A stretch of DNA of 64,000 nt from Phaeosaccion multiseriatum (Eukaryota > Protista > Ochrophyta, other classes): positions 2,976,001 to 3,040,000 of the forward strand of contig OZ218953.1 of the NCBI GenBank assembly GCA_965112735.1, given 5' to 3'. Shown here one piece after another: positions 37,977 through 57,762 of this stretch (the first letter of the stretch is position 1; each line of letters opens with the position of its first letter). The notes under the pieces were generated by a model that searched no databases, was not told the DNA's origin, and saw nothing but the letters and a program-made list of their open reading frames with translations. Both the position numbers and the translations under genes were made by a program.

Positions 37977-39114
37977 TAGCAACAGTAGCAGTAGCAAGGG
38001 GCCCGAGGGTGTCAACGGAGGCGTCGTGGGGGGGAAGGGTGTCGAGGTGGGGGCGGTACGGCTGGAGGAGGGAGGGAGAAATCTTGAGCACGATGGGTGG
38101 GATATGCTGCTAGAGCTCATGTGGGCCACTGGGCTCACTGCACGGGCATTCAAGAGTAGTGCCAGTAGTGCTGACGAGGAGAAGGAGAAGGGAGGGGTGA
38201 CAGAGGAAGAGAGAGAAGAGTTGATGGCAAAGGCCTTGGTGGCCTTGGCCAGCGTGGAAGGGCAGGCCAAGCAGACAAGAGACTTGCTCATGCAGGGTGT
38301 TGGCAAGTACGTGTGTGTGTTGGGTGGCGACGGGGAGGAGGAAGGAGGGAAGGGGCCAGACAAGGCGAGGGCAGCAGAGCTGAAGAGGAGGCAGAAAGCA
38401 GTGCCTCTGTCTCCCGCGTGGTTGGCCGCGCTGAGTAAGTGGGTGTTAAACACCGCACCAGGCGTGTGCTTGCTCCTACAGTCTCTGGCAGTCATCGTGC
38501 CAGCCCCCTCTAAGAAGAAGAAGGGAAAGAAGACGAAGAAGAAGGGAGGAGGAGGAGGAGGAGGAGGAGGGGGCGATGCAGCAGGAGGCGACGGAGGTCC
38601 TTCACCGGCGGAGAGGCGGCTGACAAAGGCGGGTGTGGCCATTTCAAGCCTGGGCAGCTCTGTGCTTGCGCTTCTCGCCACCATCGCCACAGTGGCGGGG
38701 CAGGAGGTGGAAGCCAAGGGGACTGAGGCGGAGCAGGCACGAGAAGGAGGGGGGGGGGGGGTGATTGTGGAGGTGATGTTGCGGCGGGAGCGGAGTGCAT
38801 CGAGGGATGGCACCCCTCCTTCTCCTCCTCCCCCTGCCGCTGGTGGTGGTGCTGGAGGGGAGGCATCGGCCTACGACCTTGTCCTGGGCTTCCTCGGGGA
38901 GCAGGAGAAGGATGCGGGGGCAGCGGAAGGAGCAGCAGCAGCAGCAGCAGCAGGGACGTCAAAGCAACAGCAGCAGCAGCGGCGGCGAACCAGCGACGTG
39001 CTAGGGCGGACGGTGGGCTTCGCAGCCAGCGGACAGGCCGCGAGTGGGGAGAGACTCAAGGAGGTAGTGAAGGACAAGATCGCTGCCCTCCAACAGAGCA
39101 CGTACTTCCGGTAG
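32776..39114 (+). CDS. NAA25: N-terminal acetyltransferase B auxiliary subunit (NAA25/MDM20)
   Basis: RKLGPIYNALDSGNWKQALK, LFSCYIR...AQQTATRLYK, LMLAERMVEK, LYLDILREQGK, PDQWSYY, LRGPYLAELEL, YFDAFCGKLCCLSDLRPYL, SPFNYQFKL, LDIKQVQLDSLS, AFTQGNYSK. An apparent 1-nt frameshift lies in the G-run 34678-34688. Confidence 0.92.
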
Positions 39115-39283: not shown

Positions 39284-39346
<63 letters not shown>

Positions 39347-39365: not shown

Positions 39366-41037
39366 TCATTGAGCCTGCTGGGCTTGCAGGGTCCTAACTA
39401 CCTCCTGCAGGTTGCTGCTCTGACTCTGCAACATGTTGTTCAGATAGGTCTGCTTGCCCTTCATCTTGGTCTCCCTTGTCGCGCTCTCCTGTGATTCCTT
39501 GGCCAAGTACCCCAGCACTTCCTCCTTGGTGGCCTTGAGGAACATCTTCCCCACTGTCCGGTACAGCCCCGCTTCCTCCCCTGCCTGCTTGACCTCTGCT
39601 ACTGTCAGGCTCGCTCGCTTTTGGTCTCTTTGAGAGGCTTGCAGCTGCGCCTCCACTTGGGCAATGTCGCGTTTCGTCTGAACAAACTGTTGCCCAAACC
39701 AAGATCAAAGGTCAAAGGTCAAGGTCGGCGGACAAGAGAAGGAAGAGGAGTTGATGATGAGTGAATATAGTGGGATGAATTGAGTGAGTAAGTAAGTGAG
39801 TGAGTGAGCGGGTGACTGACTGACTGATTGACTGAGGAAGTGCCCCCACCCCGTCCTTTGCTCCAACGGGCCCTCACCTTGGTCTGCAACTCCTGATACT
39901 CCGAGAGGGTCTGCTTGTCCACGCCCCCCTGCCCGCCTGCACCACCCCCGCCTCCCCCTGATGACGCTCTTTTCCGCGCCTTGATAATACGCAGCTGCTT
40001 CTCCAGGTCAGGGTTTTCTGTTGGGGGGTTGGACGCGGTTCAGAAGGGAAGTAAGTGAGTGAGAGGGTAGGTGAGATAGAGAGTGGTGAGTGAGTGGGTG
40101 AGTAAAGTGATCACCAAGCCTATAGATGGGATAGCTCACTTGGGTCTTGGGTGAGGCCCTTCTTGACCGCTGCGAGCGCCTCCGCGTGCTGTCCGTTCTC
40201 CATGAGGGCCACGCCGAGTCGGTAGTACCCCTTCACGAAGGCCGGGTTGAGGCTTACACACTTGGTAGCGTCTTCGACAGCTTTCTCGTGGTCTCCCTTG
40301 GCCACCTGGGAGAGAGGTTGTACGCAAGTTGAGTGAGTGAGTGAGTGAGTGAGTGAAGGAGGGAAGCGCTTGGTTATCATCCAGCCCGGAAGGGTATTGG
40401 GGCCCTCTCATCACTGCCTCTTCCCCGATGGGAAATCACCTACAGTTCGCAGGAAGGCACTTGACGCTAATGGCTTGCTCATATAAGCTCACCAACGGCC
40501 GGCAGGCAGTCACTCACCAGGCAAGCGCTCCGATTGCTGTAAAAGACATGGTTGGAGGGGTCGAGCTCGATCGCCTCTGAGTAATGCCGAATGGCCTCGT
40601 CATACTTCTTCAGAGCGAACGCGTCATTTCCCGCCCTGGAGGGCGAGGAGCAACACGGATGGGCAGACAGGGACAGGCCGGGAGGACAGAACCACAGGTC
40701 GAAGCAGAAAGAGGGAGGGGGGAGAGGAAGAAGGATGGAGTGATAATATGCCCCCACGCAACAGCAACACCAGAGACTGCCTGCATGAGTGACCAAATGA
40801 GAGAGTAGAGGGAAAAGGAAGCAGCAGTTTATAGCAGTTCCCATCTTCCACGGCTTTGGTTTGCCCTTTATCGATCTGATCTGCCTTACCCGCCCCCTGC
40901 CCCCGTTTCCTCCTTCCCTGTTCTCTCCCCCTGACGTACCTCTTCTTTGCGTCGGCGATACGCGCCTCCTCTGACTGCTCTGAACCTTCCGCATCTGCTG
41001 GGGGTGGTACTGGAGGGGCGGCGCTCATCTCTTTCAT
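39366..41037 (-). CDS. Fusion protein: Hop/STI1-like three-TPR domain + Gly linker + prefoldin beta-type (PFDN1-like) domain, ~280 aa
   Basis: Five frame-consistent GT-AG exons: 41037-40940, 40635-40518, 40305-40140, 40017-39878, 39686-39366. TPR part AKKRAGNDAF...YSEAIELDPSNHVFYSNRSACL...FVKGYYRLG. Prefoldin part: coiled coil, hairpin LYRTVGKMFLK, coiled coil. Confidence 0.85.
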
Positions 41038-41139
41038 CGTGGAATAAAAAGAGGTGGGGATGAGGCGGCCAGTTTTCAGTTTCAGGTACGGCCCGTACAG
41101 CTGAAACTCACACTGTTTCCCGCCTTGAGAGCGGCGCCG

Positions 41140-41263
41140 AAATGTGTTTGTTTGTTCGCTGAATCCCCTTGCAACAGCAGTATAGTGGGCTGGGAGAATA
41201 GAAATGTGTTTGTTTGTTCGCTGAATCCCCTTGCAACAGCAGTATAGTGGGCTGGGAGAATAG
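41140..41263. repeat. Perfect 62-bp tandem duplication in a divergent promoter/5'UTR
   Basis: aaatgtgtttgtttgttcgctgaatccccttgcaacagcagtatagtgggctgggagaatag occurs at 41140-41201 and 41202-41263. Confidence 0.95.
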
Positions 41264-41299
41264 AAGAGAGAAAAGGGAGAGCAAAAAGAGCATACCAAC

Positions 41300-41910
41300 A
41301 TGGCGGGTCGGATGATCTCCAAGTACCTGCCCTATTTCAATTTCGGTATTGCGTCGGCAGCGTTGACTTTTCAGACCACCGTCTTGTACCCGCGGCATGA
41401 AGGCCTGGAGGAGAGCTTGTCGGCCGTGAAGACGCAGTTCGTGGAGAAAGAGAGGGAGAAGGTGGCCCACTACGGTAAGCTTGTTCCCTCCAGCTTCCAC
41501 TCAACGCAAGATGGCACCCACCCCCACCCCTCTCCTCCTTCTCTCCCTACTCCCCCACCACAGAGAAGCTGAAGGACGACTTTCGCTCGGCCGAGCGCGA
41601 GAAGACTCGATCCATCGCCGAAATCGATCAACACATCGCCCACCTGGTGCACCGCCTGGAGTCGAAGCTGGACAGGATGGCCGAGGCGCCCGCGGCGGGG
41701 TGGTCCCAGCAGGCCCAAGGAGCAGCAGGCCGAGGGGAAGCAGTCGCAGCAGCGCGACCAGCATCCGCGGCCTCTACCCTTCATGCTGTTCAGCCCGAGA
41801 GTGAGGCCCCGACGACGAGGCTCACCGCAAGCCAGGAGACCAAGGACCTCAAGCATCTCCTGCGCACACGCACACAGCTCCTGGTGGGGGGCACCTACTA
41901 CCCGAGGTGA
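41300..41910 (+). CDS. Small single-TM + coiled-coil protein of unknown function
   Basis: Two exons (41300-~41474, ~41564-41910). N-terminal YLPYFNFGIASAALTFQTTVLYPRHE, then a charged coiled coil. From memory it resembles an uncharacterised small eukaryotic family with NF.I.S.AL.FQ..VLYPWH. Confidence 0.6.
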
Positions 41911-54120: not shown

Positions 54121-55004
54121 AGCTTGTTCGGAGCTGCATGTATGTATGTTTACATCCCTCGTGGTGGAGGGCCCTCTTACCTCACCATGACAAGGGAGGA
54201 GAGAGATGACTGCTTTCACAAGCGGGGGACGCATGAACATTCTCCACAGCTCGGTAGGTACGACGGGGCAGGGGAGGCAACCCCTGATAGGGCGGCCAGA
54301 GCTGCAGTGCTCCCCCGGAAGGCGAAGCCATGATGAGGAATGGGCTGGACTACTGAGAAAGTGTCGGTACTGGCTGTACTCTGATACGGACTTCGGTGGC
54401 TGTGATACTCGAGCATCAACCTGAACGAAGGCGTCTTTGCCAGGATACTTACACCCGGAGAGCCGAAAGCCGCCATGCTGACTGAGGTGATTGTGATGGA
54501 GAGGCGACGCTGTGTCGACCGCTAGCGCCACGGAGGGGCGGGGGTGGCGGAGTCTGGCTGTGCTTCAAAACTCACCACCCCTCTGCCAAGTCCTCGCTCG
54601 TTCGCGAGCACGCCAACCCCCGGAACCACCAGTGTGAAGACGAATGAATTGGGGACACACTGGGGTCTGATGAGATCGCCCCGATTTCTCTCTAATGGGA
54701 TGCCTGAAGGATGAACGGCTGGAGGCTGGACCCACACTGATATACGCACTTGCCGTGTCTAAGGAGCATCGTATTGGACGAATGGGGTGGTTTATAAATT
54801 GTTACAACGAACGGCGTGGCCTGGTGGGGTGGCCGGCCTACCGCCCTCGCTAATACGTAATCTTACGCCGGCAGTTAAATTCCCCCCTTTCTCTCTCTCA
54901 AGCATAGTCTATTGTGCAGTCAGTGCAATCAGCAGAGCTCTTTCCCCCCTTGTTCTCCATTTCTCACAGCGTAGAGGAGGATCCGTGGGGGAGAAGGGGT
55001 GCCG

Positions 55005-57762
55005 ATGCCGCTCGGGCGGCGGCGGCGGCGAGGCAAGGAGAAGCAGGTCTTTCCGCGCCACTTCCTTGTCCTTCTACCCTTGCTGGCGTTCCTGTGTGGG
55101 CGTGTCAGGCTTGCTCATGCCAAGCCCACCAAGTATACGCTGGAGCTGAGCGACAGCAGCCCTTGTGTGCGACTCTTCTACAACACTGGCGATGTGGGGT
55201 GCCGGACGCCAGCCTCGGGTGGCGTAGAGCTTGTCTTGTACGCCGTCACTAGCGAGGCTGAGCTAGCGGCTCTTGAGGAGACGAGCGGGGAAGAAGTCGC
55301 TGCCATCCTCCCTTCGGCGTACTTTAATGCCACCATCGTGGACCGGCTGGAGGCGTCAGGCCGGCTCGGGGCCATCATGGTGCTGGACGACTCAGACGCG
55401 CCTCCCTCTACCAACAGCGGTGGCACCACCACCTCCTCCGCCACCACCACGAGCTTTGCAGCAGCGGCAGTAGACTACAAATTCTCACCCGATGCGACGA
55501 CTCCACAAGGCGACACCACTCCGTCCTTCTCCCTTGGGGTGGACCCTTCGCACGAGTGGAACACCCGTGGCAACGGGCTCATGCTGCGCTCCTTCGACTA
55601 CCCCATTGTGCTCATCTCCAAAGGGTCTGACTCGGAGGAGTTACTGGCGGGTGGCGAACACAACGCGAAGATGGGGTCTGCCACCTTTCCTCGATACGCG
55701 GCCAAGTTTGACTACTACTTTGGCCAGGAAGACGACGTCACCTCCATCGACTGCCTGGAGTGGACGGACATAAATGGGGTAGCCTCGCCCAAGTGCACCC
55801 CGCTCGGCGGGCAGAGTGTGTGGGGAGTGGCAGGCGTCCCGGGGGACAAGGAGGTTGTGCTTGTAGCGGCACAGCTCGATAGCAGCGGCTTATTCCACGA
55901 TGCCGTCCCGGGGGGCAACGGAGTAGTGTCGGCGCTGGCAGCCATGCTGCTGGCAGCGGAGGCGATTGCACGTGCGGCAACGGAAGGGACGGTTGACTTG
56001 TCGGGCTTGGGCCACCAATTGGGATTCGCGGCGTTCCAGGGGGAGGAGTGGGGCTTTATTGGCAGCAGGAGCTTCGTGGCAGATGCGCTCAGTAGCGAGT
56101 TTGACTGCGACAACCCCGTGGACGCGGAGACGAGTCCCTCGGGTCTGGCCATGTGTCTAGATCCGCTGCACCCGTCCCTCCAGTTTAGAGAGCTGAGCAC
56201 CAGGGGAATGGCGCATGTGCTCACCGTGGACCAGGTGGGGCGCCTGGAGGCCAGTGGCAGCGATGGCAACAACAACCTGTACTGGCACTCCTCCGCGGGC
56301 GCTTCGGTTACAGACTTGAACACTCTCAATGACCTTACATCCGCCAGCGCCCAAGAAGGTGTGACCATCGACACGGCCTCCACTGCGGGCGTGCTGCCCC
56401 CTACGCCCCTCTCTTCCTTCGCAGCGGCCGACACTGCTCAGAGCGGCTTTGTGCTGGCGGGGTACGATGACGCGTTTGTGGACGACGCCTACCACAGCCA
56501 CTGGGACGTGGCAGACGAGCGCTGTGAGGTGTCCAATGTGGTGGCGGCGGGGCTGGCCCTCGCTCAGGGCTCCCTTACCCTGGCGGTGGGGAGCGGCAGC
56601 CTGGGCACCAGCGACCTAAACACCCTCTCTGTGAATGAGACTCTGGCCGAGCAGCTGGTGGACTGTCTGTCTAACGATTGGGCCTGCGACTTGATGGAGG
56701 GCTATGTGGCCACGGAGCTGGCCAATATGGAGACCTATCGCGGGGCAGAGGTTTCCATGTCGTGGCAGATACCACCCACCTTCTACACCAGCGTGCTGCA
56801 GGTGAGTGAGTGGGAGTACGTGATTTTGTGTATCGTGGTACTGCCATGATGGTGTGAGAAAGGAATGAACGAAGGAAGGAAGGAAGAAAAGGAAGCCCTG
56901 ATGATAGATACGATAGCAAAAATGTGTCCTGTGCGTTGTAACGCTCACGCTTCCGCAATGCCGTCTCTCTGCTGCTGCTGCTGCTGCTACTGCTGCTGTC
57001 ACGCCGTTGCTTTGTCTCTCTCGCATCAGTATTGGGGCAGCTTCGGCTACCCCACGCTCAGGCACTCCTTTGGGGGCTCCTCGTGGCAGCTGTATGCGGC
57101 CTATACGGAGGTAAGCCCTCTGTGTGTCGCAGCCTCCTACGCTGCTCTCCATCAAGTATCTCCTCCTTACGATTACAGGCCCTCTCCCAACCCGCCGCGG
57201 AGAGAGAAATGCCCAAAAGACGGGTTCTCAGCAATTTCTCCCTGAAACCGTTTCCCTCCCCCACTCCCCCCGACCTACGCAGGACTTCGACCCGGACGTT
57301 GACACTCTGATGCTCACCCCGAGCCGACTGGAGACGTTCGTGCGCACCTTCCTCGCAGAGCAGCTCGCCAAGATTGCAGAGGCAGCCACGCCAGGAGAGT
57401 CCTTCGCTGTGGGCGCGTGTGACTCCACGCCGGATTGCGACGGAGCCCTCTGTCCACAGGTGGGGTCTTTCGCGCTCATGGAATGTGTGGCAGGGGTGTG
57501 TGTGTGCCCCTTTGCCTTCTACCACCTCGCGATGGACCCCGGCCTGGAGCGATTAGCGGACCCGACCGGTTTCCGAGTCGTTGATGCAGAGGCCCCGCTG
57601 TGGACCGAGCCCATCTGGGACACCATTGGGGTGTCTGTGTACAAACAATCCAGCGACGCGGTGGGGGCGGTGGCGGTGTCTGTGGGGGTGGTCTTGCTTG
57701 TGCTCGGGGCGGCGGCGGCGACGCTCACACGGCGGCGCTTGCAAAAAGACAAGCTTATATGA
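55005..57762 (+). CDS. NCSTN: Nicastrin (gamma-secretase subunit)
   Basis: Signal peptide, PCVRL...GC, QLDSSGLFHDAVPG, AFQGEEWGFIGSRSF, LPPTPLSSF, YHSHWD, WTEPIW, then a single C-terminal TM. Exons ~55005-56801, ~57030-57110, ~57283-57762. Confidence 0.92.

Follow-up and report, generated by a model that had tools for sequence, protein, structure and literature searches.

A TPR-prefoldin fusion gene of Phaeosaccion multiseriatum belongs to a conserved stramenopile family and encodes a candidate Hsp70/Hsp90-docking PFDN1-type subunit

Prefoldin is generally regarded as a holdase that works independently of ATP, beside or downstream of Hsp70, and feeds CCT/TRiC. How clients move between prefoldin and Hsp70/Hsp90 is not well established. 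Canonical prefoldin subunit 1 (PFDN1; Pfd1 or Gim6 in yeast) is a beta-class subunit of prefoldin/GimC and a stand-alone protein of approximately 120 amino acids (aa). The window analyzed here is a stretch of 64,000 nucleotides (nt) from the ochrophyte Phaeosaccion multiseriatum (assembly GCA_965112735.1, contig OZ218953.1, positions 2,976,001 to 3,040,000). It contains a gene on the minus strand, at positions 41037-39366 of the window, in which a tetratricopeptide repeat (TPR) domain and a PFDN1-like domain are encoded in one reading frame. The gene has five exons and encodes a 280-aa member of a family found across stramenopiles, whose members combine a PFDN1-type domain with a Hop-TPR1-like clamp TPR on a flexible tether. 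We put at roughly 60% the probability that this protein serves as a PFDN1-type prefoldin subunit with a receptor for EEVD tails at the tip of its tentacle.

The fusion resembles several described systems in part. Like canonical PFDN1, its C-terminal half contains a Prefoldin_2 domain with helix-hairpin-helix topology. Unlike canonical PFDN1, it has approximately 150 additional residues of N-terminal TPR and linker, and the prefoldin half is only ~30% identical to human PFDN1. The hairpin motif is YRxVGKMFL in the fusion and YEGVGRMFIL in human PFDN1. In R2TP/PAQosome, a clamp TPR that binds Hsp90/Hsp70 (RPAP3) is likewise joined to a prefoldin-type module. The TPR protein and the prefoldin-like subunits of the PAQosome are separate polypeptides bridged by PIH1D1 and RUVBL1/2, and the module is made up of URI1, UXT, PDRG1 and ASDURF together with PFDN2 and PFDN6, but not PFDN1. 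In the fusion, by contrast, a PFDN1-type subunit is itself covalently linked to the TPR.

TPR1 of Hop/STI1 (PDB 1ELW) shares with the fusion the three TPR motifs, the capping helix and the five clamp residues. Hop contains three TPR domains (TPR1, TPR2A and TPR2B) and two DP (STI1) domains and bridges Hsp70 and Hsp90, whereas the fusion has a single TPR domain. The DP/STI1 family is not among the Pfam matches of the window exons or of ten relatives. The fusion relatives are 245-280 aa long, compared to 543 aa for the Hop chain 7kw7_E. SGTA/Sgt2, a top neighbor in both sequence and fold, is likewise a small adaptor in which one clamp TPR recruits Hsp70 beside a client-handling module. In SGT, however, the TPR is accompanied by a dimerisation domain and by a Gln/Met-rich region that binds tail-anchored clients, and there is no prefoldin domain. 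No description of a TPR-prefoldin fusion was found in the literature searched, in line with an earlier sequence-only reading of this DNA (hereafter the initial annotation), which was aware of no characterized example. A 2022 review of prefoldin describes client transfer as supported by HSP40/HSP70 cooperation, with some proteins bypassing Hsp70, and does not contain the word TPR.

The five exons all have GT-AG introns between them and form a reading frame of 843 nt, equal to 280 codons plus a TGA stop. Exon 1 (40940..41037) begins with the start ATG at 41037-41035, encodes a Pro-/acid-rich N-terminal extension and the clamp residue K32, and ends at the donor AG/GTACGT. Exon 2 (40518..40635) encodes TPR motif 1 and the start of motif 2, including N36 (in AGND) and N67 (in YSNRS). 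The remainder of motif 2 and all of motif 3 are encoded by exon 3 (40140..40305), which includes K97 and R101 (in VKGYYR). Exon 4 (39878..40017) contains the TPR capping helix NPDLEKQLRIIKARK, a flexible linker rich in Gly and the first part, VDKQTLSEYQELQTK, of the N-terminal prefoldin helix. Exon 5 (39366..39686) encodes the PFDN1-like domain, which consists of a coiled-coil helix, the beta-hairpin YRTVGKMFL and a second coiled-coil helix, followed by the TGA stop. The phase-matched exons and the ~280-aa frame given in the initial annotation are confirmed by this model.

The two halves meet inside exon 4. In a single frame, the TPR capping helix passes through the linker GGGGGGAGGQGG into the first turns of the prefoldin helix, so that the end of the TPR, the Gly linker and the start of the prefoldin domain lie within one exon (40017-39878), as had been proposed. 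In a sequence scan, no ATG was found in intron 3, exon 4 or intron 4. The earliest Met of the prefoldin half is M222, which falls within the beta-hairpin motif GKMFL. A separate prefoldin transcript would therefore not have a usable start.

The exon structure is congruent with the family alignment. A profile made from 141 full-length homologues and the window protein matches the window at exons 2-5 only. Exons 2, 3, 4 and 5 match profile positions 13-55, 53-110, 109-166 and 162-268, respectively, and these matches are collinear and abutting (E 1e-29 for exon 5). A collinear match of this kind is far beyond chance. All four splice junctions fall in gap-free columns of the family alignment. The N-terminus of the window protein is longer than that of its relatives. 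Residues 1-22 (MKEMSAAPPVPPPADAEGSEQSEE) form a Pro- and acid-rich extension that is ~20 aa longer than in relatives, and 31 residues precede the clamp Lys, compared to a family median of 10. A second Met is present at codon 4, and there is no alternative downstream ATG ahead of the clamp Lys.

Proteins with the same architecture are widespread in stramenopiles. An exhaustive HMMER search over 1.84 billion representatives with exon 5 returned 151 representatives at E<=1e-3, the best of which are 245-275 aa long and have a C-terminal prefoldin domain. Both TPR families and Prefoldin_2 are present in all nine of the relatives scanned. An N-terminus that resembles that of the window protein is present in 47 of the 150 listed matches, and many of the others are obvious 5'-truncated versions. 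A search with a profile of 21 full-length family members (A1) returned at least 400 clusters at E<=1e-10; for every one of the best 120, matches to PF01920 and TPR are precomputed. In BLASTP searches, residues 22-277 of the window protein align with brown-algal (Ectocarpus-type) and Tribonema proteins at 47-51% identity, with E-values down to 2e-79.

The initial annotation had suggested a search for TPR plus Prefoldin_2 architectures across eukaryotes, and the combination is found in oomycetes, diatoms, brown algae and other ochrophytes. The brown-algal members are from Pylaiella, Ectocarpus and Ascophyllum. Other ochrophyte members are from the xanthophyte Tribonema minus, the raphidophyte Fibrocapsa japonica, Chrysoparadoxa and Phaeomonas parva. 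The diatom members are from Cylindrotheca, Seminavis, Thalassiosira, Cyclotella, Discostella, Pseudo-nitzschia, Nitzschia and Mayamaea, and the oomycete members are from Phytophthora infestans (PITG_10463), P. nicotianae and P. cactorum. The ESM Atlas contains two clusters with both domains, in which the commonest phyla are Oomycota and Bacillariophyta. Many members are MMETSP transcriptome open reading frames (ORFs) flagged 'type:complete' and thus represent single mRNAs. In the P. infestans genome, TPR motifs 2-3, the linker, the entire prefoldin domain and the stop are contained in a single ORF without interruption (L004:2670-3416). Judged by these homologues, the window gene is one member of a large, conserved stramenopile family and not a one-off, and the distribution dates the fusion to the common ancestor of oomycetes and ochrophytes or earlier. 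The initial annotation therefore stands as to a real single gene with a clamp TPR and a PFDN1-like half, and is qualified in that the gene is not an isolated oddity.

These results bear on whether a small TPR gene and an adjacent PFDN1 gene have been wrongly joined in the gene model. Such an artefact is compatible with the public runs that contain the locus, all of which are DNA. It is at odds with the junction inside one open-frame exon, with the lack of an ATG for a separate prefoldin and with the family profile that runs collinearly over exons 2-5. The fusion is also not an artefact because at least 400 homologues share the architecture, among them complete transcripts and the uninterrupted P. 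infestans ORF. A merged gene model, already considered unlikely in the initial annotation, is effectively refuted and has a very small residual probability.

The TPR half is a putative carboxylate-clamp domain. When the in-frame exon pieces are compared with Pfam, TPR_1, TPR_2 and TPR_11 score above the curated cut-off in exons 2 and 3 (TPR_11 E 3e-9 and TPR_1 E 4e-9 in exon 2; TPR_1 E 4e-12 in exon 3). Both exons align without gaps to the Hop chain 7kw7_E: residues 2-38 of exon 2 correspond to chain residues 11-47, and residues 3-52 of exon 3 correspond to chain residues 51-100. In these alignments, N36, N67, K97 and R101 are equivalent to N12, N43, K73 and R77 of Hop TPR1, and K32 is equivalent to K8 in the same register. 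Hop TPR1 K8, N12, N43, K73 and R77 are the positions that we take to be the carboxylate clamp. All five clamp residues are present in the window protein, so that the intact clamp read by eye in the initial annotation is borne out by the ungapped alignments.

The clamp is conserved across the family. N36, N67, K97 and R101 are invariant in all 142 full-length members (window protein included). The position of K32 is a Lys in 118 of the 142, and in most of the exceptions the N-terminus is visibly mis-modelled. The TPR half is more similar among family members than the prefoldin half, with a median identity to the window protein of 50% and 31%, respectively. The best natural TPR relatives by sequence are Hop TPR1, SGT/Sgt2, PP5 and RPAP3, all of which bind EEVD. 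The domain thus appears to belong to the EEVD-clamp class of co-chaperone TPRs, with Hop TPR1 as its nearest relative. The TPR domain of one family member matches 1elw (Hop TPR1) at E 1e-17, compared to E 5e-13 for 1elr (TPR2A); this greater closeness to TPR1 weakly hints at a preference for Hsp70.

An AlphaFold2 model was built with alignment A1 for the Pylaiella homologue P0001, which is 47% identical to the window protein. The model has a mean predicted local distance difference test score (pLDDT) of 91.8. It contains seven TPR helices, corresponding to three motifs and the cap. An architecture of three TPR motifs followed by a seventh, capping helix is indicated by the Pfam matches in exons 2-3 and by the seven helices of the homologue model. 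Between the TPR and prefoldin parts, residues 135-148 are disordered and of low confidence. The prefoldin part consists of a helix (149-193), two strands (201-206 and 209-214) and a second helix (215-264), with pLDDT values of about 90 or higher. In Foldseek, the best match of P0001 is 1elw_A, which is Hop TPR1 with an Hsc70 peptide (template modelling score 0.96 normalized to the target, root-mean-square deviation 0.7 Å, 37% identity). The next neighbors are Sgt2/SGTA, RPAP3 TPR1 with an Hsp90 peptide, and PP5, and RPAP3 TPR2 is also among the neighbors. The neighbors found by a sequence search with a relative's TPR domain agree with these structural neighbors.

In a real fusion, the TPR clamp might dock a partner other than Hsp70 or Hsp90, such as a protein with another acidic C-terminus. 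The clamp TPRs of Tom70/71, SGT, CHIP, PP5 and RPAP3 share fold and residues and act in different pathways, and sequence analysis of the kind used here does not resolve peptide specificity. Against another partner, the fusion family conserves all five clamp residues, and the closest relative by both sequence and fold is Hop TPR1 bound to an Hsc70 tail. To our knowledge, every close structural neighbor listed binds the tails of Hsp70 or Hsp90. A different partner is considered improbable, and docking of an Hsp70/Hsp90 tail is the favored reading.

The C-terminal half is PFDN1-like. Exon 5 alone matches Prefoldin_2 (PF01920) at 37.9 bits, compared to a cut-off of 27.6 (E 1.8e-9, profile positions 7-103 of 106), so that the prefoldin match on which the initial annotation depended is present. 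When exon 5 is compared with the sequences of solved structures, human PFDN1 is the best match (7wu7_1 at E 3e-7; also 6nr8_1). PFDN2 matches at E 0.2, and PFDN4 and PFDN6 have no match at E<=1 among the PDB sequences. The ESM Atlas clusters nearest to the prefoldin domain are named 'prefoldin subunit 1'. Across the 142 members, the hairpin motif G-K-x-F and several heptad positions are 90% or more conserved. The linker is 18-46 aa long, rich in A/S/K/G and unconserved. These comparisons support the assignment of this half to the PFDN1 type.

The topology of the model suggests where the TPR is placed. In a beta-type prefoldin subunit, the two helices are antiparallel, the hairpin forms part of the central barrel, and both chain ends lie at the distal tip of a tentacle. 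Given this architecture and the helix-hairpin-helix topology of the prefoldin part, the N-terminus, the tether and the TPR are expected at the distal tentacle tip. The homologue model thus supports a placement of the TPR on a flexible tether of 18-46 aa at the distal tip of the prefoldin coiled coil, and the tentacle-tip position proposed in the initial annotation agrees with it.

We propose that the prefoldin half would take the PFDN1 position of the alpha2-beta4 hexamer by means of its beta-hairpin and coiled coil. Since a beta subunit has both of its chain ends at the distal end of a tentacle, the TPR would then hang at the client-binding opening. By capturing the C-terminal EEVD of cytosolic Hsp70, and perhaps that of Hsp90, it might keep the upstream ATP-dependent chaperone close to the entrance of the prefoldin cavity. 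Hsp70/90 could in that case transfer clients, for example actin and tubulin, straight to prefoldin, which would deliver them to CCT/TRiC. What is shown is the identity of the domains, their conservation and the geometry; EEVD binding, incorporation into the hexamer and hand-off are inferred.

The relationship of the fusion to stand-alone PFDN1 was assessed with prefoldin-domain trees. In these trees, all of the TPR-bearing rows fall on one side together with ten TPR-less rows, and 50 complete stand-alone PFDN1s fall on the other. A core of 30 fusion-type rows is supported at 95/89 (ultrafast bootstrap, UFboot / Shimodaira-Hasegawa-like approximate likelihood ratio test, SH-aLRT). The grouping of 35 fusion-type rows versus 50 others was defined post hoc, after the tree was seen. 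Strict monophyly of the TPR-bearing rows is rejected by the approximately unbiased (AU) test (p 4e-6), because the ten TPR-less rows are nested among them.

Several observations weigh against, or limit, the reading of the fusion as a PFDN1-type EEVD receptor. The branch that unites all 35 fusion-type rows against the 50 is weak (UFboot 13 / SH-aLRT 51). The ten TPR-less rows nest within the fusion clade. Some of them start inside the domain ('MELQEQ...'), some start in the capping helix or linker, and others begin with junk sequence. These rows look like truncated models, and real short isoforms are possible. On the canonical side, only five of the ten representatives could be named: Chroomonas (a cryptophyte), Rhodelphis, Diphylleia, Phalansterium (an amoebozoan) and Chilomastix (a metamonad). 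None of these five is a stramenopile. A profile of ten diverse canonical PFDN1s, used in an insensitive word-index search for a stand-alone stramenopile PFDN1, returned 12 matches. The structure model is that of the 47%-identical homologue P0001 and not of the window protein. The public runs that contain the locus are four in number and come from one sample; they yield unspliced DNA contigs that are identical to the window, with no exon-exon joints.

The conserved fusion might instead be a paralogue, that is, a seventh, prefoldin-like protein that acts in its own oligomer or in a URI-type module, with a separate stand-alone PFDN1 serving the canonical hexamer. It would then be the stramenopile analogue of the link between Hsp90 and the prefoldin-like module in R2TP/PAQosome. 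Alternative beta-type subunits are present in such a module, the PAQosome, in animals. A stand-alone stramenopile PFDN1 is compatible with the insensitive canonical-profile search and with the naming of only five of ten representatives. The fusion-type prefoldin domains group apart from the canonical PFDN1s of other eukaryotes, a pattern that fits either lineage-specific orthology or old paralogy. Against a paralogue, none of the five named canonical-side representatives is a stramenopile and the best human match of the prefoldin domain is PFDN1 itself. In addition, once the fusion clusters are set aside, the oomycete prefoldin domain has the PFDN1 of chordates and ascomycetes as its nearest ESM Atlas clusters. 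These nearest clusters include no stand-alone cluster from stramenopiles, although the oomycete fusion cluster has 83 members. Taken together, the named representatives and the nearest Atlas clusters favor the view that the fusion is the stramenopile PFDN1, without proving it. A paralogue is considered rather unlikely, though a better candidate than a different TPR ligand.

Two kinds of TPR-less sequence were observed in the course of this comparison. P0095, P0110, P0123, P0108 and P0099 form a well-supported fusion subclade of mostly TPR-less predictions that begin with 'MELQEQ', exactly at the start of the prefoldin domain. The TPR-less predictions of this type are probably truncated models, and the lineage may have a short isoform with an internal start. 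P0050 is a 116-aa PFDN1 encoded at 619-969 on L001, a JGI metagenome contig of 1078 nt from an AT-rich organism. It is truly stand-alone, because there is no TPR ORF upstream of it on this contig. In the quick tree, P0050 appears beside two fusion representatives, and in the careful tree it falls within the canonical group.

If the fusion is the PFDN1 of its lineage, it may have replaced canonical PFDN1 in the whole of the Gyrista (oomycetes and ochrophyte algae), so that each hexamer would carry an EEVD receptor at one tentacle tip. This broader reading is tentative, and we hold it with less than even odds. If true, the family would be a natural 'Rosetta-stone' fusion that reveals direct hand-off of clients from Hsp70 and/or Hsp90 to prefoldin, and the first known case in which a prefoldin docks an ATP-dependent chaperone apart from CCT. 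That the fusion is kept under selection across a major eukaryotic lineage, one that includes diatoms, kelps and Phytophthora pathogens, argues that physical coupling of the two systems is useful; conservation extends to both the clamp residues and the motif for prefoldin assembly. Tractable diatoms or oomycetes offer an experimental handle, in the form of point mutations in the clamp or deletion of the TPR. As far as found, the stramenopile fusion family is experimentally uncharacterized.

The family sequences, together with precomputed assignments of both Pfam domains, are already present in NCBI, UniProt, MMETSP and the ESM Atlas. What is new is the recognition and interpretation of the architecture, and not this locus. 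The public labels do not reflect the architecture consistently. In UniRef, relatives including P0011, P0025, P0155 and P0156 are labelled 'Hsp70-Hsp90 organising protein'. The NCBI labels include 'Stress-induced-phosphoprotein 1' and 'TPR repeat-containing serine/threonine protein kinase', and JGI uses either 'chaperonin cofactor prefoldin' or 'TPR repeat protein'. Names of the Hop and kinase types are misnomers, since these proteins combine a single TPR domain with Prefoldin_2 and lack DP/STI1 and kinase domains. Recognition of the fusion corrects the systematic database mis-annotation as 'Hsp70-Hsp90 organising protein'.

The fusion gene is flanked by a convergent ORF that ends at 39114 and by a divergent ORF on the plus strand that starts at 41300. 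The divergent intergenic (promoter) region, from the fusion ATG at 41037 to the ORF at 41300, is ~260 bp long and contains a tandem duplication at 41139..41265 (62-bp unit, 2.0 copies, 100% match). A bidirectional promoter element may have been duplicated here recently. A (CT)29 microsatellite at 39285..39342 begins 24 nt past the stop codon and probably lies in the 3' untranslated region. Simple repeats of the (TGAG)n / CTCA type are present in introns 2, 3 and 4 (40330-40356, 40052-40122 and 39768-39838, respectively). Contigs cover the intron-4 repeat several hundred times as deeply as its flanks, and the motif is therefore spread genome-wide. Elsewhere in the window, a 616-aa ORF on the plus strand (54999-56849) contains the large-lobe (E 3e-26) and small-lobe (E 1e-23) domains of Nicastrin and is a gamma-secretase subunit gene.

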